Source: Obrimoposthia wandeli
Lineage: Eukaryota
Length of the DNA: 64,000 nt
Direction of reading: 5' to 3'
Assembly: GCA_977020255.1 (NCBI GenBank)
Contig: CDROCS010003176.1
Coordinates: 124,001-188,000, forward strand
Of the stretch, positions 50,568 to 64,000 are shown piece after piece. The position numbers and the translations under genes were made by a program. How positions within the stretch are numbered: position 1 is the first letter of the stretch; every line of letters begins with the position of its first letter. Under the pieces are notes generated by a model that saw nothing but the letters and a program-made list of their open reading frames with translations, made no database searches and was not told the DNA's origin.

Positions 50568-51293
50568 TTACAAAATTTTAGATAAGAACTGCTGTAAGCG
50601 CGGGTGTATTGTCGTATCGAATACATTTTCAGGCGTATCACTCACTAATAGCTCACCGTCTTCCATAAATAACACACGATCAGCCACTTCTCGCGCAAAG
50701 CCCATTTCATGGGTTACCACCACCATGGTCATTCCATCAGCAGCAAGTGCTTTCATTACGTCGAGTACTTCCCCGACCATTTCAGGATCGAGCGCCGATG
50801 TAGGTTCATCAAATAACATGACATCAGGCTTCATCGCCAATGCGCGAGCAATAGCCACACGTTGTTGCTGTCCGCCAGATAAATGAGAGGGGTACACATG
50901 CATTTTTTCGGCTAAACCGACACGGTAAATCAGATCTTCTGCGTGTTTTTCGACTTCTTTGGCATCACGGTTTGTGACCTTCAATGGCGCAAGCATGACG
51001 TTTCCCTTCACTGTTTTGTGAGGGAATAAATTAAAAGACTGGAACACCATACCTACGTTTTCACGTAACGCATTAATGTTGCTACCACGGGCGTACATAT
51101 CCATGCCATCAATCATGATGTCACCCGAATTAATCACCTCTAACTGATTCAACGTACGTAAAAATGTTGATTTACCAGAACCAGATGGACCAATAATAAC
51201 AACCACTTCCCCACGCTTTACGGTTGCACTGACTTTTTTCAGTGCATGGCATCCGTTGGGGTAGATCTTATCGACATTTGTAGCAACAATCAT
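50568..51293 (-). CDS. Polar amino acid ABC transporter ATP-binding protein
   Basis: [28 protein letters not shown]. Confidence 0.92.
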
Positions 51294-51312
51294 ATCGTCG
51301 CCTTGGTAATCT

Positions 51313-52260
51313 CTAGTCACTAGACGCTAACCTCTTCTCAATACGTTGCACTACCCATGATAGTGAAATAGTCAGTAATAAATACAAACCAGCAACCACA
51401 AACCACACTTCAAACGTTGCAAAGCTGCCACTAATTACCTCTCGCCCAGCTTTGGTTAAATCAGTAATAGAAATAACAGATACTAATGAAGAATCTTTAA
51501 TCAGCGTGATAAGTTGACCCGCCATTGGCGGTAATGTGCGCTTAAATGCTTGAGGTAAAATAACGTAAGCCATTGCCTTGGGGTAATTCATCCCTAATGA
51601 ACGTGCAGCTTCCATTTGCCCAGGGGGAATAGATTGAATGCCCGATCGAATGATCTCGGCAATATAGGCGCCAGTAAAAACAGAAAGCGCCACCACACCG
51701 GCCGTAAATCGTTCTAAATCGAATATTGTGCCTAAGAAAAAATAGACAATAAATATTTGAACTAGCAGTGGTGTGCCTCGAATAAGTTCAACGTATAAAA
51801 ACGAGAGATTTTTAGTCACAGGGTTATTTGAAATTCGCATCAAACCTGCAACTAAGCCGATAATAACGGCAAAGAATAATGATATAACCGATATTTTCAG
51901 GGTTACCCACAACCCTACAATTAAAGGACCGACAGACCAGTGTTCTGATTGGGCAAGAACATCACCCTCGAAAACAATATCGCTATCAGCAACAAACAGC
52001 TCGTCGTACTGAGTAACAACTTGTGGTTCATCATCGTAATCGAAATTAACAACCAATGAGCCATCATCGTTAATAACAACACTGCCATCCCCAGCGGCGA
52101 TCACTTCAAGTGGAGAAGTATCAAGCAAGAAAGGCGTCACCCTTTCCCATTGCCAGTTATAGTTTATTTGTTTTGAGGCTTGGTAAATACCAAAGATAGA
52201 CGACACGACGATAACTACAAAAATGCCGTGCCACAGCCAACGATTAGACGTCCTAAGCAT
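51313..52260 (-). CDS. Polar amino acid ABC transporter permease
   Basis: [25 protein letters not shown]. Confidence 0.9.
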
Positions 52261-52339
52261 AACTACTTCCATTAGGCGTATTGGATATTAAAACAAGAAG
52301 ACAAAAAATTGGCCAGACACTATGCCTAGCCAATAAAGA

Positions 52340-53137
52340 TTACTGTACTTGCTTTAACCAGCTGTCATTTTTAAACCACTTATCGTAAACACGATCATAA
52401 GTGCCATCGCCTTTAATCTGACGAAGGAAGTTATTCAAAAAGTTCAGCATGTCGCTATCGCCCTGCGCAATAGCCCACCCTAAAGGTTCATAAGTAAATG
52501 GTTGTTCTAGGTGAATAACTTTGCCGTCATTTTGTGACGCATAAATCGCGTTAAATGGCATATCGTAAATGAACGCATCCGCTTTACCGTTAGCCACTTC
52601 TAGTACAGCATCCGATTGCGTTTCGAAAACATTTAGCTTCGCTTTGCTGATCATGCGCTTAATAGCTTGCTCGCCCGTTGTGCCTAACTTGGTTGCAATC
52701 GTATATTTACTGTCGTTAAGATCTTTATAGCTAGTGATTTTACCCTCAAGCTCAGGGTTTATCAGAATAGACTGACCAATAACAATGTATGGGTCAGCAA
52801 AATTCACGCGCATATTACGCTGTGCATTGATTGTCATACCGGCATTGATCATGTGGCACTTACCCGTCAACAATGTTGGAATGATGCCATCCCACGCGGT
52901 ATTAATGGGTACATATTTAACACCCATTTGGCGAGCCATTTGCTTGCCAATATCAATATCAAAACCAATGAATGAGCCATTCTTACTCTTCATTTCAAAC
53001 GGCATATAACCCGCATCAAAACAAACACGTAGCTCGCCTGATTTAGCAATATCGTCAAGAATAGGACCCGCAGTAACAGCAGCAGAAGTACTCATTAGAG
53101 CTACAGCGGCAACTATGCCACCCAATAATTTACGCAT
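52340..53137 (-). CDS. Polar amino acid ABC transporter substrate-binding protein
   Basis: Signal peptide; YMPFE, GFDIDI, WDGIIPTL. Confidence 0.9.
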   Translation of the reverse strand: MRKLLGGIVAAVALMSTSAAVTAGPILDDIAKSGELRVCFDAGYMPFEMKSKNGSFIGFDIDIGKQMARQMGVKYVPINTAWDGIIPTLLTGKCHMINAGMTINAQRNMRVNFADPYIVIGQSILINPELEGKITSYKDLNDSKYTIATKLGTTGEQAIKRMISKAKLNVFETQSDAVLEVANGKADAFIYDMPFNAIYASQNDGKVIHLEQPFTYEPLGWAIAQGDSDMLNFLNNFLRQIKGDGTYDRVYDKWFKNDSWLKQVQ

Positions 53138-53639
53138 AAACATCCCTGTTATTTGTCGCTGTTTCAGTAATGAATCAAAACAATCAATTTGTTTTTAACA
53201 GCCTGCATCAAAAAAGATACTACCGTTTTATAGCAAATAAACCGCCAGTAACTCAAACATTCACAACACATAAAACAACAAAACCTTTAACATTAGATAC
53301 ATTAAAAACATACTAATGGTGGCTTTATAGCATTAGGTTAGTGGTAAGTACTGAATATATAGATAAAAGCATGATTACCTGTCACAGATGGATAAATATG
53401 CGAAACTTTAGAAAATATATTTAATTTATGTATTCATTCTATTTAATGCCTTTTTTCAATAATAATTGCCCCATGCTCGAAGCATAACGCTCAAAAAATC
53501 AGCCATTGATGTAATACATATGACCAATTCATGATTTTTCATTGATGTCGTCACAATTTGCACCATAATACTGGATATAAATACAGTTAATATTGATACA
53601 TAGGCGAGGCAGTGAAAATAACAAACCCTAAGAGCACCA

Positions 53640-54401
53640 GTGGCTAATTTCAATACACATTTGAATTATGCGGCTATCGCCAGTAGTTTAGCGGCCACCG
53701 CTTTATTATCGGCGGGAAACATACAGCCTATTACTGCACTATGGTTAACCTTTTTAGGTACTATTGGTGGGCTACTGCCTGATATCGATTCAGATAACTC
53801 AACCTCAATGCGCACCCTATTTAGTTTATTCGCTTGCGTATGCTGCTTTGTTTTAATTTGCCACCTCTATGCACAAGTCACGATGCTAGAGCTTGTTTTA
53901 GCGGCTGTGGCTTTTTATATCTTTATTCGCCATAGCGCAAAGTCGTTTTTTGAAAAACTCACCATTCATAGAGGCTGTTGTCATTCATTGGCTTTTATTG
54001 CATTACTGAGTATGTGCATTGTGTGTATGACCCACTATATGGGGTATAGCAATGCGACCAGTTGGCTATCTGGATTATTCATCGCTTTCGGTGGGGTGCT
54101 ACATCTTGCATTAGATGAATGCTATAGCGTTGATTTAGCGAACCGAAAACTAAAGTCCTCTTTTGGTACTGCGATGAAGGTCGTTTCATTTAAAAACCCT
54201 TTCATTAGCACGGCGCAATTGGCTGCGGTTGTCGCCTTATTCATTATTGCACCCCCCTTCAATTCAACAATAGATTTACTCTCTGATTGGCATCGTTTTC
54301 AGTTTCGACCTGAATGGCTTAATCTACAAGTCACTTCAAACTGGCTAAAAGATATTCTTAGTTCAACGGCGGGTATTTTTCGTGGTGAAGTCCCTTCGTA
54401 A
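53640..54401 (+). CDS. YdjM-like inner-membrane metal-dependent hydrolase
   Basis: N-terminal TH, LLPDIDSD, HRGCCHS and HLALDE motifs; GTG start. Confidence 0.8.
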   Translation: MANFNTHLNYAAIASSLAATALLSAGNIQPITALWLTFLGTIGGLLPDIDSDNSTSMRTLFSLFACVCCFVLICHLYAQVTMLELVLAAVAFYIFIRHSAKSFFEKLTIHRGCCHSLAFIALLSMCIVCMTHYMGYSNATSWLSGLFIAFGGVLHLALDECYSVDLANRKLKSSFGTAMKVVSFKNPFISTAQLAAVVALFIIAPPFNSTIDLLSDWHRFQFRPEWLNLQVTSNWLKDILSSTAGIFRGEVPS

Positions 54402-54730
54402 TAATGTCGAAACAAGAAAAATAAAGATGTAATTTCTTAACTGCGGAAACTGTACCACTACAAACAAACCCAACCATTTTTTGCCAAGTCTAAGGGCCGT
54501 GCTAGCTTTAATTGTTTAGCCACATGCCGGAAAAAACAATATGAGTGAAACCAAACAGGCATTATGTGATTACTGCTGCCCTATCTCAAATATGGACATA
54601 AATGGTTTAGAGGGAATGCTCTTTCCTAGTTAAGTTCAATTAGAAAAAGTAAGTCAAAACACTAGGAAGCCCAAGGCAAGACGCGACCCCGTCAATTTCT
54701 TCGGTTCATCTTTGGTTTCAACTGATAACG

Positions 54731-55096
54731 TTATTCAGGTATGGCTACTTCAACACCCATTCTTTTTCTAATATGAGCAAGAGATTTATTAACCGTATGT
54801 TTGAAATCCGAAAGGCTTCCCTTCTTGGCTCCGAATTCACATGCTTCATGCACTTGCTCTAGTGCTTCCGATAGATAACCGAGCGCATCTAACTCTTCAG
54901 AAAAGAAGGCTTCAATATTGTTAAAGTTATACCGTGCCGATAGAAATCTGTATAAATTGTAAACGTCTGTATTTTCCCAAGAGGTTAGTGCATGAATTAA
55001 TTCATCTTTCGTGAATTGTAGCGGCCAACAAATATTGGCCAAGATCTTAGAGTTTTGCGCAGAATATAACTGCGTTAGTGCATTTAATTGCCCCAC
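54731..55096 (-). other. Hypothetical ORF, possibly the C-terminal remnant of a larger gene
   Basis: 121-aa open frame with no evident RBS, inside a degraded region. Confidence 0.4.
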
Positions 55097-55142
55097 AGCA
55101 ATAAAGGAGGCTAGGTATAGAATATATGTAGGAGGGCGAAAT

Positions 55143-55535
55143 ATGAAAAATGGCGACGAAAAAGTAACTGTTTATTACGATGGCAGCTGCCCGCGTTGTA
55201 TTAAAGATCGTAATAATTATCAAAATCTGGCTGAAGAGAAAGGCGATTCGGTATGCTGGGTTGATATTACCGGGCAGGAAAAGTTGCTGCAGCAGCTAGG
55301 TATCGACCCCCAGAAAGCATTGACCGAACTGCATGTTAAAACAGCAAGTGGGAAAGTTTTGAGCGAACTTGATGCGTATATCCTGTTAATGAGCCGAGTC
55401 AGTCGTCTTAAACCGCTGGCTTTTTTTATCGGCCTGCCGTTTATTCGTCCACTTCTGGCCCGCTATTATCACTATAGTGTGGCTAAACGGCTGAAGAAGA
55501 GCGGCCGCTACCCGCAGCGTCAAAATCGGAAATAA
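55143..55535 (+). CDS. DUF393/DCC-family thiol-disulfide oxidoreductase-like protein
   Basis: YYDGSCPRC (DxxCxxC); GGAGG RBS before MKNG. Confidence 0.85.
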   Translation: MKNGDEKVTVYYDGSCPRCIKDRNNYQNLAEEKGDSVCWVDITGQEKLLQQLGIDPQKALTELHVKTASGKVLSELDAYILLMSRVSRLKPLAFFIGLPFIRPLLARYYHYSVAKRLKKSGRYPQRQNRK

Positions 55536-55674
55536 AAACCGCTTGCAGCTGCAAATTTTTCCATCTGCAATTGAACAAAAGAAAAGCTTATCAGCATTAA
55601 CTATCTGTCTGCTCGTCAAACACCTGCACCATATTGTCGACCACGCTGACCAGATAAGTCGCAATATCTTCAAA

Positions 55675-55791
55675 TGCCGTTCAAGTGTTTATAAGTATAT
55701 TTCGGAAGACTACCTCCCTAAACCAGTTTCAACAGGTGAACGTTAAGGCGCATGGTTAGACAGTGAGATTGATGAGTGGGTAACACTGTAG
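55675..55791 (+). pseudogene. AlpA-family excisionase/regulator remnant
   Basis: CRSSVYKYISEDYLPKPVSTGER*GAWLDSEIDEWV; in-frame TAA at 55744-55746; N-terminus missing. Confidence 0.75.
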
Positions 55792-56114
55792 ATTGAACAA
55801 CATAATAATGAAGAGGAGTTACAGGTTAAGAATAGATAAGACATAAAGACAAGGGTGTCTATTCCGTCATGTTATTTTTTTGAGTGGTACTAGTTGGTTG
55901 TTTAGGCTATGGGGCGAGTCAGCATAAATCTCGCTGACCCGATGGTGAATATTTCCGTGTTTCAAATTTTTCACAAAACACTACGGTCTAATACCATTAA
56001 TCTATAACAGCCAAGACCCTCTTTGCTGTCACTCACATGACTCTGAGCCTTAATCGCATTTAGATTCTCATGCTATTAAGACCATCAGGGTTCGGATAAT
56101 AGCCTCATAAACAA

Positions 56115-57611
56115 TCACGCATTAATAAGTACTAGAGAATCTAAGATCCCTTGACCGCTATGAATACCGCCTTCATTTTCACTGGCAGGCTTACTGCGGA
56201 TTAAGTAACCAGCATAGCCGTCTAGCTCCGTTACAGGCTCACCTTGATAATGGGCGGTAAACAAGCCGATTTCGCTCACAAGATCGTTCACCAACGCCTG
56301 CTTTCCATCACGAACCGCAATGGTTGGCGTATCTCGCTCATGCGGATACAAACGCTGCATCAATGCCCATGCGTCATACTCTTCTGGCTTCAATTTGGCT
56401 AATGTCTCACTGATCTGATCTCCGAATACGCAATGCCCACCACCTTCGCCTTGGTTCTTGAGTACCCACTCTTGCTTATCGGCAGAGGTATTAAACCATT
56501 CTATTGCCTCCTTCGAAATGGGCTTCATATCCGCCAAGACACTCTTGACTAATCGAGCTTCTTCTAGGGTTAACCCCCAACGGGCATACTCTTGTGCAGG
56601 CATCATGGTCAATAGCATCTGCATTGATTTACTCGTTGCAAGCTGCTGGCTGATGGTCGCGTTCATTGCTACGTAATGCATTTCAATAAACAGACGCGTT
56701 TGGCTTAATGTGTGACAGCAAATATCTTCATTCAACTCTGGTGCCCAGTAGTCTGAATATTGATAGCCCGCACGTAAGTAAACCGTGTCAATTGCGCCAA
56801 CATTTTCAAGAATTAAGCGCTGATTGTCACCACTAGAGAGCTGAGTGCTCAATTGCTCAAAGGTACGTCTTACTGTGCGAACCCCAATCTTTTGCAATGC
56901 AACTTCCAATAGGTGCTGATCGTAAACATTGTCTTCATCTTTCTGCACAATCATCAGGAAAGTTGGCTTTTGTTCGTTCGCACTATCACCCAGTTCAGCA
57001 AAGTGCGCCTTTACCTTTCTTGCTGAGGCAGCAATACCTATAGCGAGTTGTTCCATGCCGTGATTGTCTGCTGGCATTGCCGTATCGTCTTCTAACCAAT
57101 TACGGTAGACATCGTTCCATTGGTCTTGCACAAAGCAATGCAGCTCTGTAGCACGCTGACCAAATGGCCCCATACCTGCAGCAATACCATTGAATTCGAT
57201 CACTTTTGCCCCATGCTGGCGATCATCCATAAAATCGGTACGCATCAAAAGTAGTGGCTGGCGAGCAGCTTGCTGACGCTTAGATGCATCACCATGTGCC
57301 TGCTGATGTAGCTCCATCAAACGACCAAAAAACGGGTCAGCCTTTGCCATGGCACTAAGCGACTCTTGCAAGAAATCATGATCTTCAGACACGTTGCTTA
57401 CCAACTTAGCAATCAGTGGTGTAACAGAAAGCAGGTGTTGGTACACAGAGCGTTCCATCGTCATCGGTGCGATGCTGAATGGTACGTGCCTTGCCGTATT
57501 ATCGGCCTGACGAAACGCGACGCCGTGCATAATTTCCCACTCTAGGAGATCGTCAATGACTTCTTGAGGCATAAATTGCTTATTTTCGTTATTAATAGTG
57601 TCGTTATTCAT
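56115..57611 (-). CDS. Eukaryotic-type glutathione-synthetase-fold ATP-grasp ligase
   Basis: RTDF, IEFN, YLRAGY, VLKNQGEGGG, SEIG, GYLIRSK...EGG...LDS; 498 aa, unlike the shorter bacterial GshB. Confidence 0.85.
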   Translation of the reverse strand: MNNDTINNENKQFMPQEVIDDLLEWEIMHGVAFRQADNTARHVPFSIAPMTMERSVYQHLLSVTPLIAKLVSNVSEDHDFLQESLSAMAKADPFFGRLMELHQQAHGDASKRQQAARQPLLLMRTDFMDDRQHGAKVIEFNGIAAGMGPFGQRATELHCFVQDQWNDVYRNWLEDDTAMPADNHGMEQLAIGIAASARKVKAHFAELGDSANEQKPTFLMIVQKDEDNVYDQHLLEVALQKIGVRTVRRTFEQLSTQLSSGDNQRLILENVGAIDTVYLRAGYQYSDYWAPELNEDICCHTLSQTRLFIEMHYVAMNATISQQLATSKSMQMLLTMMPAQEYARWGLTLEEARLVKSVLADMKPISKEAIEWFNTSADKQEWVLKNQGEGGGHCVFGDQISETLAKLKPEEYDAWALMQRLYPHERDTPTIAVRDGKQALVNDLVSEIGLFTAHYQGEPVTELDGYAGYLIRSKPASENEGGIHSGQGILDSLVLINA

Positions 57612-57639
57612 AATGTAATGACTCTTTCTATTTTATCAC

Positions 57640-59529
57640 TTATGCCGCGCTCACAGCCGTTAGGCCTAGCGTGCTATTTTGATGTTCGTTTTCTTCTTGC
57701 GCTTTCTGTGCAAGGTATAAATCTCGGTAATCGCCATCTTGTTCGATTAGCGCCTGGTGTGTACCACTCTGTACCACCCTACCGCTGTTCATCACTAAGA
57801 TTTGATCGGCGTTTTGAATCGTCGATAAGCGGTGCGCAACGGTGATAACGGTTCTGCCGTCTTGGATATTCTCAAGAGCCTGCTTTACCGTTTCTTCCGA
57901 TTCACTGTCGATATTCGCCGTCGCTTCATCAAGCAGGAATATTTTCGGATCGTGAGAAATCGCACGCGCTAATGCCAATAACTGTCTTTCACCCACAGAA
58001 AGCGTAGCGCCGCCATTGCTTGGTTGATGATCAAAACCACCAGGTAAACGATGAATGAAGCGATCCGCTTTCACCATTTCGGCTGCTTGTATCGCTTTAT
58101 CACGGCTAGCTTTTAGTGCTTTATTGTCATTGTCATTGTCATTGTCATTAAGCGTACTGTCATCACTCGTATAGCCATGACTAAAAGCAGCATCATGAGA
58201 TAAATCGATATTATCAATAATTGAACCGCTAAAGATGGTTGGGTCTTGTGATACCAAGCCAAACAGCTTACGCAGTTGTGATTCAGGCAGTTTATTAAGC
58301 GGTTGTCCGCCAATAAGGATGTCGCCTTGCTGCTGTTGATAAAAACGCATCAACAGATTGATCACCGAACTTTTCCCGCTTCCGGTATGCCCAACAATCG
58401 CTGTAAACTCGCCACCTTTTGCCGTAAAGCTGACATCTTTGAGTACTGGCTTATCGACTTCGTATCCCATTGTTACATTACGAAACTCAATATCGTTGCT
58501 ATCATTTATCTTCACTTCCGGCATCGATTGATTATGAATTTCAGAATCATCGTCTAGCAGCTCAAAAATACGTTTCGAAGACACGGTTGCAACCTGCAAC
58601 TTGTGCAGTTCCATCGATAACTGTCGGAACGGGTCAAAGAAGCGCTCAATGTAATTCAAAAACGCATATAAAGTACCAATCTCAACAACGGTCGACATCG
58701 ATGCTCCTGCAAACCACGCTACAATGCCTGCTGCTGTCAACGTCGAAATCAAGCGTGTCAGTGGTAACAACATCAAGCTATCAATTGCGACTGACTTAGC
58801 ACGGAAGTTAAACCAGCTTTGGTTATCTTTCTCAAACTTAGTTTGGAACGCCTTTTCTTGACGAAACGCTTGAATCAACGCCATGCCTTGCAACGATTCG
58901 TTTATTTGCCCGTTAATATTACTGACTTGAACTCGAATACCATCAAACACTGACATTGAAATCTTGCGATACAAATGCATCGTCATCAACAAAATAGGAA
59001 TCAGCACCAAACTGAGCAACATCAAACGCCAATCCAATAATGCAATTGCGATGAAAATAGCCGTGATGCGCAATGCACCTTGAATCACGGTTGGAATCGT
59101 CGACACGTACATATTACGTAGCGATTCAGTATCGTTGGTAATGTAAGAGACCAGTTTACCCGTTGATAATTTATCGAACGTCGCGATAGGAAAGTTCAAT
59201 ACATGGCGGAATAGTTGTTCACGTACGTCTTTAACCACCAGCAATGCACTGTGTTTAAAGGTGACCGCTTGTAAATACCCAAACACCGCGGCAAACACAT
59301 AGAACAGCATCATAAGCCCGATCAATGTGATAAGTTGTTGCCATTCAAATTGCTGAGGCACAATGACCTCATCCAACACAATTTTAGCCAACCATGGAAT
59401 CGCCATCTCGGCACTGACCGCAAGCGCCAACATCAAAAAGGCAAAGCCAAACCGCGCTTTGTGCGGCAATGAGAAGGTCAATAAACGGCGATAAAGCGCA
59501 TTATCTTTCATTTGACGCTTACTCATCAT
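57640..59529 (-). CDS. Heterodimeric ABC exporter subunit (MdlB-like)
   Basis: TMD+NBD; GHTGSGKS, degenerate signature LSVGERQ, canonical LLDEAT and VAHRL. Confidence 0.9.
   Translation of the reverse strand: MMSKRQMKDNALYRRLLTFSLPHKARFGFAFLMLALAVSAEMAIPWLAKIVLDEVIVPQQFEWQQLITLIGLMMLFYVFAAVFGYLQAVTFKHSALLVVKDVREQLFRHVLNFPIATFDKLSTGKLVSYITNDTESLRNMYVSTIPTVIQGALRITAIFIAIALLDWRLMLLSLVLIPILLMTMHLYRKISMSVFDGIRVQVSNINGQINESLQGMALIQAFRQEKAFQTKFEKDNQSWFNFRAKSVAIDSLMLLPLTRLISTLTAAGIVAWFAGASMSTVVEIGTLYAFLNYIERFFDPFRQLSMELHKLQVATVSSKRIFELLDDDSEIHNQSMPEVKINDSNDIEFRNVTMGYEVDKPVLKDVSFTAKGGEFTAIVGHTGSGKSSVINLLMRFYQQQQGDILIGGQPLNKLPESQLRKLFGLVSQDPTIFSGSIIDNIDLSHDAAFSHGYTSDDSTLNDNDNDNDNKALKASRDKAIQAAEMVKADRFIHRLPGGFDHQPSNGGATLSVGERQLLALARAISHDPKIFLLDEATANIDSESEETVKQALENIQDGRTVITVAHRLSTIQNADQILVMNSGRVVQSGTHQALIEQDGDYRDLYLAQKAQEENEHQNSTLGLTAVSAA
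58123..58146. repeat. (ATTGTC)4 in-frame microsatellite (Asn-Asp run) inside the NBD
   Basis: Read directly; encodes NDNDNDND in an insertion before the signature motif. Confidence 0.9.
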
Positions 59530-61312
59530 CTTTTCCCTCAATGCCAGTACCTTGAATAGCAGCATCGCCACTTATGGACAGCCCCAACTGGCTTTGACGT
59601 TGATAAACCATTGAATACCAGCCTTGATTCGCCACAAGCGCATGGTGTGAACCACGCTCTTCTACTTGCCCATCATTGAGCACTAAAATATGATCAGCTT
59701 CGATAATATTGGTTAGACGCTGCGTTACAAGCAACATGGTTTTATGGGAATAATGCGCCTTTAGGTTTTGACGAACTTGCACTTCAGTCTTCATATCTAA
59801 CGCACTAAATGGATCATCCAACAAAAGGATATCAGCACCCGACAATAGAGCTCTAGCAAGAGTCAAACGCTGTTTTTGACCACCCGACAGATTCGTACCG
59901 CCCTCTCTAAGTGAAGTATCAAAGCCTTCAGGCATCGCTTCAATTTCTGCTCGAATACCCGCCATTTCAGCCACATGCTCGATTTCTGCTTGCGACGCAT
60001 CAGGTTTCGCCAACGCGATATTCTCTGCGATAGTGCCTGAAAACAAGTGCGGTTTTTGAGGAACCCAAGCCAGCTTACTGCGTAAGGAACCAAACGTTAG
60101 GCTGTCGCTTGGCATACCTGAAATGTGAATACTCGACGGCTTCTCAAGTTGAAATTGGCGCAGTGCCAAGTGCAATAGCGTACTTTTACCGCTGCCCGTT
60201 GGCCCAGTAATGCCGACCAACCCACCCGATGGCAAATCAAATTTCACTTTATCGAGCGCTTTACGATTCGCTTTTTGATAAGTGAATGATTTGATATCAA
60301 AAGACATACTTGCATCCGCTGTTTTCGGCAGTGTTATGTCACCTTCTACGACTTCAATATTTTCAGCAAATAACTGCTCTAGACGACGCCATGACGTCTT
60401 ACCTCGTTGAAATACATTGAACTGCCAACCAAACTGCATAAATGGCCCAAGTAGTTGCCCAAGGTAAAGTGTAAAGGTAGTAAACAATCCCACAGTTATG
60501 CCGCCTTGTTCTATCAACCATGCTCCGTAGCCTAGTGAGATGACGAACGACAGCCCATAGACTAATTGAATAGTGGGACCAAATGCCGCATCCACTTTTG
60601 CAACTAAAAGATTTGCATCTACCGTTTCATCTAAGGTTTTGCCAAAGCGCTGTTCTTGACGATCAGAAATGCCGTGTGAGCGAACCGCACGAATACCCGA
60701 TACCGTTTCACGAGTCTCTTCGGTTAGATCAGAAAACGCAGATTGCGCCTTACCGAACGCCTTATGTAGCTTGACACCATAGCGGCGAGTAATGAGTACT
60801 AATAATGGGAAGGGAAGCAATGCGACAGCGGTAAGTTCACCACTAACAACAAAGATCATTCCCAAAATGACCGTAATACCTGCGATCAAAGAGTCCACCA
60901 ATGTCATGACCCCCATTCCCATGGTTTCTTCCACCGCATTAAGGTCATTGGTCGCATGTGCCATCAGATCCCCTGTACTTCTGCGAGCATAGAATTCAGG
61001 TGACAATTGAGAGAACTTTTGAAACAACTCACTTCGAATCACACGCGTTATCGCAATAGAAGCACCATATAGTTTGCTTTGCCATACAAAACGCAAACCG
61101 TACATTACCGCGCCCGAGACAATAATCCCGGCAACATGGGTGATCATAGCTTGAGAGTCTAATGTTCCTTCACTAATGCCGTCGACAATTCGACCAATCA
61201 ACCATGAAGGAATCAAATTGACCAACGCAACCACCTGCAATGCCGCAAAGGCAATCAGATAGTGTCGGCCAAACATTTTAAGGTAGCCCTTTAATTTCCA
61301 AAGAATATTCAT
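59519..61312 (-). CDS. Heterodimeric ABC exporter subunit (MdlA-like)
   Basis: TMD+NBD; GPTGSGKS, canonical LSGGQ, degenerate Walker B LLDD and switch VTQRL. Confidence 0.9.
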   Translation of the reverse strand: MNILWKLKGYLKMFGRHYLIAFAALQVVALVNLIPSWLIGRIVDGISEGTLDSQAMITHVAGIIVSGAVMYGLRFVWQSKLYGASIAITRVIRSELFQKFSQLSPEFYARRSTGDLMAHATNDLNAVEETMGMGVMTLVDSLIAGITVILGMIFVVSGELTAVALLPFPLLVLITRRYGVKLHKAFGKAQSAFSDLTEETRETVSGIRAVRSHGISDRQEQRFGKTLDETVDANLLVAKVDAAFGPTIQLVYGLSFVISLGYGAWLIEQGGITVGLFTTFTLYLGQLLGPFMQFGWQFNVFQRGKTSWRRLEQLFAENIEVVEGDITLPKTADASMSFDIKSFTYQKANRKALDKVKFDLPSGGLVGITGPTGSGKSTLLHLALRQFQLEKPSSIHISGMPSDSLTFGSLRSKLAWVPQKPHLFSGTIAENIALAKPDASQAEIEHVAEMAGIRAEIEAMPEGFDTSLREGGTNLSGGQKQRLTLARALLSGADILLLDDPFSALDMKTEVQVRQNLKAHYSHKTMLLVTQRLTNIIEADHILVLNDGQVEERGSHHALVANQGWYSMVYQRQSQLGLSISGDAAIQGTGIEGKDDE

Positions 61313-61329
61313 AATTACACAGTTTTCTC

Positions 61330-62985
61330 TTAAGCTTGGTTTGCCTGAGTTTGGGGCGAATGGCACCGAATTGGCTGCAGACTCGTTGCATGCGAAAGAT
61401 CATCACAATCAATTAGGCTCTTTTGTGCAACATATTCCTCAAAACTCACTTCTTGAACTGCTTCTAGCTGTTTTTGCTTAAGCAAAGACGCCTTCGCAAG
61501 CGATTCTAGTTTGGTCATTTCATCCAAAGAAATAGTCTTATCTAAGTACCCCTGTATATGTTGCTGAAAGCATGCGTTAATAAATGCAGTATGGCTCTGC
61601 CTCTCTTGTTTCATACGGGTTAAAACCTGTGCCGATGGCGTTAATGCGCTGTCTTCAAACTTTGCTTTTTCACGCATCACAGCGCTCTCATAATCGTCAC
61701 TTTGATGGGGATTACTCATACCTTTCGCCATTTCAGCTAGCGCGTTCATTAATGGTGCGGCCAAATCAATAAGCGAAATATCTCCGTCCATAGTTGGCAG
61801 TATCAACCCCTGTTTTCTACCTTGCATGGCAACCAATTCTTGTCTTTCCATAATGAGTGTACTTTCCTGCTCACTCATTTTTGGGCTTGGTGCTAGTGCG
61901 CTATAAATCAGAAACAGATCAAGAAACTGGCTCTGCAACTCATCAATACCCAAAGGTAGCAAGGGGTTATTATCCAAACTGCGTAATTCAATGTATTGCA
62001 CACCGTAGTGGCACATCGCAACTAAGGGACGCATTTCTGCATTTACTATTTTAGGACGAACAGAACCATACAGTTCATTTTCTAATTGGAGAACAGATCC
62101 GTTCAATTGTTGGTCACTTGCCAAATGTGTATATCGCTTACTTGGTTTAGTCAACGCATTACATAGCCCAGTGAGGTATTCTTCTTTATTGTTAAAGCTC
62201 ATAGAGAAATGAGATTGCTCACTACTGCCATACCCAAGATTACTCAAGCGCAGCGATGTGGCCCAGGGTAAATAATCGGTAGTGTCGTCCCATTGCTCTA
62301 ATGCACGGGGCTTACCTTGTAGATAGCTCTTATCGACGACAGGTGAAGCTCCAAACAGATATGGAATAATCCAGCCATGGCGTAATACATTGCGAATCAA
62401 ATGAAAATAACGTTCAGAAATAAACGTTTCTAACGGCAACTTACTTTCAGTATGTACATGAAGCGCCTTCCAAAAACTGTCTGGTAATGAAAAATTGTAG
62501 TGAATGCCTGAAATGAGCTGCATCCGCTTTCCATAACGATTGGCTAGCCCTTCACGGTAGCGAGCCTTCACCATTCCAGCATTCGAAGTACCGTAACGAG
62601 CAATAGGAATATCGTGATCATCAGGCAATGCAGGGGGCATACTCGCAGCCCACATCGACTCACCCTCATTCAAATTAGTCGCAACAAAGTGGTGTAAAGA
62701 AGCCAGTGTTTCAAATGTCTCACTTCTCTCATTAACCGCAGGAGTCACTAACTCTAGCTGCGCTTCTGAAAAATCGGTGGTGATGTACGGATGAGTAAGT
62801 GCAGAGCCCAAAGATACGGGATGTGGTCGTTGAGAAAGCGCCCCATTGGGTGTAATTCGAACCATTTCACGTTCAATTCCACGGCGAACATCACGCAGGG
62901 TTTCTTTCACTTGATCGCTTGCTAAAAATTCCAGCATTTCTATAACTGGTGTCTTAACTTCAGAGGGGATAGCTTCATTTCTCAT
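61330..62985 (-). CDS. gshA: Glutamate--cysteine ligase
   Basis: RGIERE, GSALTHPYITTDFSEAQLELVTP, MQLISGIHYNFS, YIELRSLD. Confidence 0.9.
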   Translation of the reverse strand: MRNEAIPSEVKTPVIEMLEFLASDQVKETLRDVRRGIEREMVRITPNGALSQRPHPVSLGSALTHPYITTDFSEAQLELVTPAVNERSETFETLASLHHFVATNLNEGESMWAASMPPALPDDHDIPIARYGTSNAGMVKARYREGLANRYGKRMQLISGIHYNFSLPDSFWKALHVHTESKLPLETFISERYFHLIRNVLRHGWIIPYLFGASPVVDKSYLQGKPRALEQWDDTTDYLPWATSLRLSNLGYGSSEQSHFSMSFNNKEEYLTGLCNALTKPSKRYTHLASDQQLNGSVLQLENELYGSVRPKIVNAEMRPLVAMCHYGVQYIELRSLDNNPLLPLGIDELQSQFLDLFLIYSALAPSPKMSEQESTLIMERQELVAMQGRKQGLILPTMDGDISLIDLAAPLMNALAEMAKGMSNPHQSDDYESAVMREKAKFEDSALTPSAQVLTRMKQERQSHTAFINACFQQHIQGYLDKTISLDEMTKLESLAKASLLKQKQLEAVQEVSFEEYVAQKSLIDCDDLSHATSLQPIRCHSPQTQANQA

Positions 62986-63020
62986 TTGTCTTATTCGATA
63001 AAAATGTTATTCATTCTATT

Positions 63021-63048
63021 AAGACGCAGAGAAATGAAAAAAGACGCA
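63021..63048 (-). promoter_or_regulatory. Candidate ECF-sigma promoter for the gshA operon
   Basis: TGCGTCTT twice on the minus strand, 20 bp apart, 35-62 bp upstream of gshA; CGTC core as in ECF -10 elements. Confidence 0.4.
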
Positions 63049-63184
63049 ATTTTTTAAACAATTTTTCCAAAAAATTAAAATATAGATAGAGGCAAGGTGA
63101 AGAAGCTCTTCTAAAAGAAGAAAACGACCCAGAAAGTAAGTCGATTTATAGAAAAAAGTACCAATGAAATGTTAAAGATCAGGC

Positions 63185-63739
63185 TTAACCCACACCGTTA
63201 CTTTTAGCGAATTCAGCACACTCTGCTTTGGGATAGAAATCAATGATACCTTCGCGTCCCGTTTCCACATTACAGCAATTCGTTAGAATTTCTTTAAGCT
63301 TAACTCGGCCACGTTGAACCCGACTTTTCGTTCCGGATAATGACAACCCTAATTGTTCAGCGACTGCCTGTTGAGATAATCCATCTAATTCAGAAAGAAT
63401 CATTGCTTGGCGATATTTCTCTGGCAAACAATCAAACATCGGGCGTAAGCACTGCGCCATAGTTTGTAAATTGACAACTTCAGCAGGCACCTCTTCTTCT
63501 GTTAGGTTATCCATCAGCTCTTCATGGCTTTGGTGCGATCGGTAGAAATCCATAATCGTATTATGAGTAATGCGATACAGCCAATTTTTAAGTTTATCTT
63601 TAGCTTCTAGCTGATGAATTTTCTGGCTTGCTTTGATGTATACCTCTTGCAAGATATCGTCAGCTAAGTCTAGATCACCTGTTTGTTTCACTATGTAACT
63701 TCTTAATTGGTCTTTGTGTGTTAACCACTCCGCTAGCAT
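63185..63739 (-). CDS. sigZ: ECF RNA polymerase sigma factor, SigZ-like
   Basis: DDILQEVYIK, WLYRITHNTIMDFYR, region 4 LSLSGTKSRVQRGR, C-terminal NCC. Confidence 0.85.
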   Translation of the reverse strand: MLAEWLTHKDQLRSYIVKQTGDLDLADDILQEVYIKASQKIHQLEAKDKLKNWLYRITHNTIMDFYRSHQSHEELMDNLTEEEVPAEVVNLQTMAQCLRPMFDCLPEKYRQAMILSELDGLSQQAVAEQLGLSLSGTKSRVQRGRVKLKEILTNCCNVETGREGIIDFYPKAECAEFAKSNGVG

Positions 63740-63841
63740 AGCCTTTCCTCAATTTACGATGCTTACTTACTATATTTCGATGATAATAGAATTATAAGTA
63801 AATTTAAAGTGTCAAAGACCAAGTAAGTCGATTGTTAGTCT

Positions 63842-64000
63842 TTATGCAGGTATGGCGGTCACCACCCATCGCAAAGGGCCATTTACGCTAACAGTCGTAA
63901 AGGGATAACACGTAATTAAGGTTAACTGCGACCACGGCGTTTGTGCGGCTACCTTTGTCTCTTGTTGGTTCACAACCTGCAAACTTGTGACAATGTAACG
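63842..64000 (-). CDS. Sortase (marine proteobacterial type), C-terminal part; 5' end outside the window
   Basis: Hand translation ...SQLTLITCYPFTTVSVNGPLRWVVTAIPA*; TLxTC catalytic motif plus downstream Arg; absent from the ORF track. Confidence 0.85.
   Translation of the reverse strand, partial: RYIVTSLQVVNQQETKVAAQTPWSQLTLITCYPFTTVSVNGPLRWVVTAIPA

Follow-up and report, generated by a model that had tools for sequence, protein, structure and literature searches.

The 64,000-nucleotide window analysed here (contig CDROCS010003176.1 of assembly GCA_977020255.1, Obrimoposthia wandeli; positions 124,001 to 188,000 of the forward strand) carries four co-directional minus-strand genes at 56115-62985. 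From the listing of open reading frames (ORFs) and Pfam/NCBIfam models, these encode a glutamate-cysteine ligase (GshA), two ATP-binding cassette (ABC) half-transporters resembling SmdA and SmdB, and a ligase with the fold of eukaryotic-type glutathione synthetase (GS). The cluster is read here, by a modest preference over other explanations, as an inducible auxiliary module that stands apart from housekeeping glutathione synthesis and that would raise the level of glutathione (GSH) or a close analog and export the peptide or its derivatives. The strongest new evidence for an inducible stress module is a regulatory layer that was absent from the initial annotation of the window, namely an extracytoplasmic function (ECF) sigma factor and a conserved promoter-like motif. 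The carrier of the module is a marine Photobacterium; the ligase is 98% identical to its homologs in Photobacterium profundum ATCC BAA-1252 and P. frigidiphilum, and the same stretch is also present in cold-seep and sediment metagenomes.

Gene organization and conservation of gene order

The four ORFs as listed extend over 61330-62985 (551 amino acids, aa), 59519-61366, 57640-59571 and 56115-57611 (498 aa), and matching to homologs places the likely true start codons of the transporter genes at M19 (61312) for the first subunit, ABC1, and at M16 (59526) for the second, ABC2 (Table 1). With these starts, gshA and ABC1 are separated by 17 nt, ABC1 and ABC2 overlap by 8 nt, and ABC2 and the ligase gene are separated by 28 nt, which bears out the tightly spaced minus-strand arrangement that the initial annotation had described.

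Table 1. Features of the cluster and of its upstream region, in window coordinates.
Feature	Position	Strand	Basis
ECF sigma factor, SigZ/ECF238 type	63185..63739	-	TIGR02959 above cutoff; Sigma70_r2 + r4_2 (Pfam)
Terminator-like hairpin 3' of sigma gene, candidate	63125..63143	-	consensus scan, weak
Bipartite promoter-like motif	63013..63052	-	position weight matrix and regular expression, comparative
gshA paralog, glutamate-cysteine ligase, 551 aa	61330..62985	-	PF04262; TIGR01434
ABC half-transporter 1, SmdA/BmrC-like	59519..61312	-	ABC_membrane + ABC_tran; SmdA model
ABC half-transporter 2, SmdB/BmrD-like	57640..59526	-	ABC_membrane + ABC_tran; SmdB model
Divergent eukaryotic-type GS-fold ATP-grasp ligase, 498 aa	56115..57611	-	PF03917 + PF03199

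A pattern scan using one genome per species returned 269 stretches encoding relatives of the ligase, the best 80 of which were used for all locus counts, and synteny was scored by tblastn of the window proteins against these 80 loci. They derive from Photobacterium, Vibrio, Aliivibrio, Shewanella, Moritella, Psychromonas, Paraglaciecola, Ferrimonas, Endozoicomonas and others, at 68-98% identity, and the ligase gene lies on chromosome 2 in all four complete genomes among them. The ligase gene stands alone, with the other module genes not nearby, in 36 of the 80 loci and follows the sigma gene only in a further 13. The complete arrangement of the window, sigma-gshA-ABC-ABC-ligase, is found in 12 loci, followed by gshA-ABC-ABC-ligase with no adjoining sigma gene (7/80), ABC-ABC-ligase (7/80), sigma-ABC-ABC-ligase (4/80) and sigma-ABC1-ligase (1/80). 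The gene arrangement is not due to chance, given that gshA, the ABC pair and the ligase gene recur in the order of the window in 19 of the 80 species-representative loci and that in 31 the ligase gene is immediately preceded by the ABC pair; gshA is never present without the ABC pair.

The comparison across these loci upholds the earlier observation that the exporter genes are nested between the two ligase genes, which is the case in 19/19 loci that have gshA. The four-gene unit, however, is not itself the conserved entity that had been supposed: both gshA and the ABC genes are missing from 49 of the 80 loci, and the ligase is the conserved core of the module. In Ferrimonas pelagia, a MarR gene is followed by the same four genes and then by a Grx2-like gene, and the ligase is 58% identical to that of the window. 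The ligase, pump and sigma proteins of Photobacterium are 68-86% identical to those of other orders, as in locus L008 (Shewanella sp. c952) and loci L013, L059 and L073, which represent Shewanella, Paraglaciecola and Endozoicomonas. Identity across orders is thus far above that expected from vertical descent, which suggests that the module has spread laterally across orders.

A SigZ-type sigma factor and a conserved promoter-like motif

The sigma protein passes the SigZ family model TIGR02959 (197.8 bits; cutoff 168.65) and contains the Pfam domains Sigma70_r2 and r4_2. Cysteine conservation was counted in 35 orthologs from the loci. Cys97 in the linker, Cys155-Cys156 and the C-terminal Cys174 are conserved in 28-33 of these, whereas a second linker cysteine, Cys104, seven residues from Cys97, is present in 14 only. 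No ORF lies between the sigma gene and gshA, and no anti-sigma gene adjoins the sigma gene, its upstream neighbour being the end of another gene. Sigma factors of group ECF238 (SigZ, CorE2) possess a short Cys-rich C-terminal extension and act without anti-sigma factors (PMC7826278, PMC8999054). The window protein resembles CorE/CorE2 and SigZ (ECF238; PMC7826278, PMC8999054, PMC4937300) in passing the SigZ model, in its short C-terminal Cys extension and in having no adjoining anti-sigma gene. Assignment to the CorE-like group (former ECF44) was rejected, as the CxC linker motif that defines this group (PMC4937300) is absent and the linker holds the single conserved Cys97.

Between the sigma gene and gshA, the window possesses the motif TTGCGTCTTTTT-N10-TGCGTCTTA, the halves of which each contain GCGTC (63043-63047 and 63023-63027; 20 nt from start to start) and the second element of which ends 37 nt before the gshA ATG. 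In the form GCGTCTTTTT-N10-GCGTCTTA, the motif precedes the first gene of the cluster in 52 of the 80 loci. A loose regular expression for the motif matched 78 times in the 80 loci, with 75 matches on the strand of the ligase gene, compared with 0 in reversed sequence and 0-2 in shuffled sequence. A scan of the 64-kb window with a position weight matrix (PWM) gave a single match, the site upstream of gshA, with a score of 41.5 and nothing else above 12.

The motif lies upstream of gshA in 19/19 four-gene loci, with no second copy before the ligase gene in any of them, and directly upstream of the ligase gene in 24 of the 36 ligase-only loci, including those of the Splendidus and Harveyi clades. 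This distribution, in which the motif precedes gshA alone where all four genes are present and the ligase gene itself where it stands alone, argues for the four genes being carried on one transcript. In 10 of the 13 sigma-ligase loci the sigma gene itself has the motif in front of it, an arrangement resembling the autoregulation by which ECF sigma factors are typically controlled. That the sigma factor reads the motif is inferred from their co-location and from the CGTC element, which resembles a -10 element. One metatranscriptome only, from marine sediment, contains contigs that match parts of all four genes at 95-99% identity, and these give a weak indication that the genes are transcribed.

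Elsewhere, the motif also precedes genes for a PatB-type C-S lyase (TIGR04350, at cutoff), an SDF symporter, an Ahr-like Zn-dehydrogenase and an ArsP_1 permease, and these genes suggest a sulfur, electrophile and metal theme for the candidate regulon. A motif-preceded gene for a PatB-family C-S lyase directly follows the ligase gene at L052:11597-12769, L060:11548-12744, L074:11627-12802, L080:4516-5685, L084:11574-12740, L085:11584-12750 and L034:13822-14997, and lies between the sigma gene and the ligase gene in Aliivibrio kagoshimensis (L016:8735-9904). These eight loci belong to Shewanella, Psychromonas, Ferrimonas, several Vibrio, Photobacterium kasasachensis and A. kagoshimensis, and the lyase probably belongs to the same regulon as the ligase. 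In several four-gene loci, a motif-preceded gene for a 468-aa SDF-family symporter is located approximately 3.4 kb upstream of the sigma gene (L012:456-1859, L013:412-1821, L017:925-2328 and L008:1894-3297), and this protein could be a cystine or amino-acid importer that feeds the pathway.

A dispensable gshA paralog

The window GshA belongs to PF04262 and passes TIGR01434 at equivalog level (489.6 bits; cutoff 393.3). Its alignment with E. coli GshA (1v4g) covers residues 27-460 and scores 362 bits, and the ERE, HYNFS and YIE(L/V)RSLD blocks are conserved. Its close family, from 93% down to approximately 47% identity, is present only in scattered Vibrionaceae and Ferrimonas, and the next matches, at 41-45% identity, are GshA proteins of other orders. 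Among matches of at least 47% identity, the family is missing from most Vibrio species; a universal Vibrio housekeeping gene would not give such a patchy pattern, and the window gene is therefore a paralog and not the housekeeping copy.

A clean deletion of 1.13 kb, corresponding to window 61380-62509 and with approximately 12 bp of overlap at the joint, has removed most of the operon gshA in P. frigidiphilum (L007:5511-6376) and in a second close relative (L004:5492-6349), while the sigma gene, the promoter motif, the ABC pair and the ligase gene are intact in both. The paralog is dispensable and patchily distributed. Identity with the universal luxS-linked gshA of Vibrionaceae was rejected on the basis that the window gene does not adjoin luxS, that its family is patchy and that it is deleted in these two relatives. 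In comparison with GshA and GshB of E. coli, the first enzyme is a true member of the GshA family and the pathway likewise runs from a gamma-Glu-Cys ligase to a second ligase. In the window, however, the two ligases are encoded together, on either side of a pump, gshA is a patchy and dispensable paralog, and the second ligase is not of the short bacterial GshB type.

The ligase forms a divergent clade of the eukaryotic GS fold

The second ligase is composed of a PF03917 ATP-binding domain (E = 2e-59) with an inserted PF03199 substrate domain (E = 6e-19), in agreement with the eukaryotic GS architecture proposed initially, although it belongs to a divergent clade of that fold. Its score on TIGR01986 (238.3 bits) is below the equivalog cutoff of 329.8, and its matches in the PDB are plant, yeast and human GS (E = 1e-43 to 1e-33). 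On a maximum-likelihood tree of 26 representatives, the ligase clade and its sister group separate from the canonical proteins, which carry GGGNN and AA in the two loops, with 100/100 support and a long branch.

Residue roles were taken from a structural study of Trypanosoma brucei, human and yeast GS (PMC2845819). In the alignment, the ligase retains R124, E139, N141, E226, N228, Q232, R280, Y283, K385, E389, R472 and K474. The Mg/ATP and acyl-phosphate residues (R125, E144, N146, K364, E368, R450 and K452 of human GS) are invariant as R124, E139, N141, K385, E389, R472 and K474. The gamma-glutamyl contacts Glu214, Asn216, Gln220, Arg267 and Tyr270 (GS numbering) are kept, as are the Cys-carbonyl contact Arg125 and the acceptor-carboxylate contact Arg450 (R472). 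Ser149 and Ser151, which are strictly conserved in eukaryotic GS and contact gamma-Glu-Cys (PMC2845819), are replaced by Ala144 and Gly146, the G-loop GGGNN has become GGGHC, and the A-loop GGVAAG has become GGIHSG. All members of the clade, down to 37% identity, share the serine, G-loop and A-loop changes, and the sister group carries GGGNV and GVH-x.

In yeast and legume enzymes, exchange of the A-loop pair shifts acceptor specificity to Ser or beta-Ala (PMC3473041), and an acceptor other than glycine is possible for the window ligase. The GGIHSG loop was nevertheless rejected as proof of a non-glycine acceptor or a new product and is suggestive only, since it is main-chain amides of the A-loop that meet glycine and some true eukaryotic GS have His at the position of Ala462 (PMC2845819). 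Eukaryotic GS (human 2HGS, yeast 1M0W and plant 5OES) and soybean homoglutathione synthetase (3KAJ) share with the window protein the same two-domain ATP-grasp organization of PF03917 and PF03199, the Mg/ATP ligands and most residues that bind the gamma-glutamyl and carboxylate groups. The window ligase differs from them in being bacterial, approximately 30% identical, below the TIGR01986 cutoff, changed at Ser149/Ser151 and in both loops, placed in a separate clade and apparently under an ECF-type promoter.

A heterodimeric exporter with one degenerate ATP site

Both pump subunits are half-transporters in which a transmembrane domain (TMD) is fused to a nucleotide-binding domain (NBD), recognized as ABC_membrane and ABC_tran. 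The best model for ABC1 is SmdA (555 bits; cutoff 845) and that for ABC2 is SmdB (457 bits; cutoff 746), both below equivalog level. Among solved chains, B. subtilis YheI (BmrC; E = 6.5e-122) is closest to ABC1 and YheH (BmrD; E = 1.1e-119) to ABC2. The NBD of ABC1 is degenerate, with a non-catalytic Walker B (LLLDD) and an H-loop in which Gln replaces His. ABC2 combines a canonical Walker B (LLDE) and H-loop with a degenerate signature (LSVGE). From these motifs, the pump is predicted to pair a degenerate ATP site with a consensus one, as is the case for BmrCD, TM287/288 and SmdAB. BmrCD (YheI/YheH) and SmdAB/MdlAB are its best structural and family matches and share this asymmetric design; the window pump differs from them in scoring below the SmdA/SmdB equivalog level, in lying between two thiol-peptide ligase genes and in an Asp/Asn-rich insert in its second subunit. 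This insert is a low-complexity DNDNDNDN stretch in the ABC2 NBD (window 58100-58200), and one metatranscriptome contig has a 6-nt deletion within it at 58131, indicating that the length of the repeat varies between strains.

CydDC, the one bacterial glutathione exporter that can be cited here, is a heterodimeric ABC transporter of E. coli reported to move both glutathione and cysteine into the periplasm (Pittman 2005, as cited in PMC11719327). It resembles the window pump in being a heterodimeric exporter of fused TMD-NBD halves for which a thiol cargo is proposed. Identification of the window pump as CydDC was ruled out by scores far below the CydD/CydC equivalog cutoffs: on the TIGR models, ABC1 reaches 247 for CydD (cutoff 435) and 228 for CydC (cutoff 329) and ABC2 274 and 213, respectively, and on the PRK CydD and CydC models both subunits are far under the cutoffs of 630-684. 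The SmdA and SmdB models score higher for both subunits, and the window pump, unlike CydDC, is not linked to cytochrome bd genes.

Proposed function and alternative explanations

The proposed mechanism starts from what the analysis has shown: the identities and spacing of the genes, the recurrence of their order, the divergent ligase clade, gshA as a paralog and the conserved motif. The link between sigma factor and promoter, transcription as one unit, the signal that induces it, the product and the cargo of the pump are inferred. The SigZ/ECF238-type sigma factor would be switched on directly by a thiol-reactive signal, for example a metal or an oxidant/electrophile, as suggested by its four conserved cysteines and by the lack of an adjoining anti-sigma gene. 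The activated sigma factor would then read the bipartite promoter at 63013-63052, giving a single transcript that covers the gshA paralog (gshA2), the ABC pair and the ligase gene. The gshA2 product would make gamma-Glu-Cys, and the GS-fold ligase would add a C-terminal residue, with glycine, yielding GSH, as the default guess and another amino acid possible. The BmrCD/SmdAB-type heterodimer, with its one degenerate ATP site, would export from the cytoplasm the peptide itself or its disulfide, conjugates or metal complexes.

The initial annotation had proposed a dedicated pathway that makes and secretes a gamma-glutamyl peptide and had noted no characterised system of this layout. The separation of these genes from the housekeeping pair stands, with gshA a patchy paralog that is deleted in the closest relatives and the ligase a divergent form located on chromosome 2 in the four complete genomes; the identity of the product and its secretion are not supported as stated. 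In full-text searches, no paper was found on a bacterial eukaryotic-type GS, on this operon or on SigZ-type sigma factors in Vibrionaceae, nor was any paper found that describes a system with such a layout. All parts of the module come from known families, and as far as can be told its combination of genes, divergent ligase clade and ECF control are new. Gammaproteobacterial glutathione synthesis has been treated as a solved, constitutive two-gene pathway, and the locus points to a second, inducible route built on a eukaryote-style ligase with altered substrate loops, apparently under an anti-sigma-free, Cys-rich ECF sigma factor, with the ligase in some lineages physically coupled to its own supply of gamma-Glu-Cys and a dedicated pump. 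The module is a testable candidate for regulated export of thiols or conjugates in marine bacteria, including Vibrio fischeri, V. harveyi and the oyster-associated Splendidus clade; it also provides a defined motif and a candidate regulon for an unstudied branch of SigZ/ECF238 and a natural set of GS variants for studies of acceptor specificity.

Several observations weigh against an inducible auxiliary module as described. The -35 half of the motif (GCGTCTT) does not contain the AAC seen in many ECF promoters and is identical to the -10 half, and the motif could therefore be a direct-repeat binding site for another regulator; LysR or MarR neighbours replace the sigma gene in some loci, and the Ferrimonas pelagia cluster has no motif. 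The metatranscriptome contigs bridge no gene junction and could derive from DNA. The acyl substrate of the ligase is uncertain, as both of the strictly conserved serines that bind gamma-Glu-Cys are replaced (A144, G146). The separation from housekeeping synthesis also takes from general knowledge that a bacterial-type gshB and a luxS-linked gshA are present in the same genome.

The best-surviving alternative, though itself unlikely, is that the ligase makes no glutathione and instead joins gamma-Glu-Cys, or another gamma-glutamyl acid, to a non-glycine acceptor, so that the ABC pair would export a new low-molecular-weight thiol. The clade-wide fixed changes at substrate contacts (S149A, S151G, NN to HC in the G-loop and AA to HS in the A-loop), the 100/100 separation from canonical GS and the sub-equivalog TIGR01986 score all favour such a product, as do the shifts to Ser or beta-Ala that follow from A-loop pair swaps in known enzymes (PMC3473041); an ordinary GshB is moreover expected in these bacteria, so that a second plain GS needs a reason. 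Against this, the A-loop meets glycine by main-chain amides and His occupies the position of Ala462 in some true GS (PMC2845819), Arg450, the acceptor-carboxylate binder, is retained as R472, and the Grx2-like gene beside the Ferrimonas cluster suggests ordinary GSH chemistry. The fuller version, in which an undescribed gamma-glutamyl-cysteinyl-X thiol, distinct from glutathione, is both synthesized and exported by the ABC pair upon induction by a Cys-sensing ECF sigma factor under metal or electrophile stress, is somewhat less likely again, and if true would constitute a new bacterial low-molecular-weight thiol system that has spread laterally among marine Gammaproteobacteria.

Less probable still is a role in conjugate or metal detoxification, in which the ligases would only boost the supply of GSH and the ABC pair would act as a GS-X pump for glutathione conjugates or metal-thiolates and not for the free peptide. 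The PatB-type C-S lyase family includes cysteine-S-conjugate beta-lyase activity. The putative co-regulation of a lyase of this type, an aldehyde-reductase-like dehydrogenase and an ArsP/SO_0444-like efflux permease would fit detoxification, as would a pump of the multidrug BmrCD/ABCB type and a sigma factor of the metal-sensing ECF238 kind (PMC7826278). However, no glutathione S-transferase gene lies in or beside the operon within the window, most loci with both the ligase and the motif lack the ABC pair, and the sequence does not reveal the pump cargo. The idea that ordinary housekeeping glutathione genes flank an unrelated multidrug pump by chance is very improbable: all four proteins do come from well-known families and are annotated plainly as glutamate--cysteine ligase, ABC transporter and glutathione synthase, but different genera share the gene order, with the pump nested in every instance, one conserved promoter motif precedes the whole block, gshA is deleted in the nearest relatives with the remainder intact, its family is missing from most Vibrio among matches of at least 47% identity, and the ligase gene is on chromosome 2 in complete genomes.

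Neighbouring genes and minor features

An Rfam scan of 53000-64000 gave no riboswitch or leader. A scan of the region for terminators and sigma-70 sites gave site counts no higher than in shuffles, and the hairpin at 63125-63143 is therefore a candidate only. Convergent with the ligase gene, a plus-strand gene at 55011-55535 encodes a DCC1-like thiol-disulfide oxidoreductase; as a neighbour of the cluster it is conserved only in P. frigidiphilum (L007), and it has no motif match. Located 3 kb past the ligase gene, on the minus strand at 50568-53143, is a polar-amino-acid ABC importer that consists of a binding protein, a permease and a third ORF of 250 aa, with weak matches to cystine and glutamine systems and no motif. 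The PWM scan of the window matched the gshA site only, and neither the DCC1-like gene nor the importer can thus be assigned to the module. On the other side of the cluster, a minus-strand gene at 63740-64000 ends just upstream of the sigma gene. From comparison with the gene table of a relative (L004:2114-4854), it is probably the sortase of a pair formed by a VIT/VWA protein and a sortase, and it appears to be unrelated to the thiol module.

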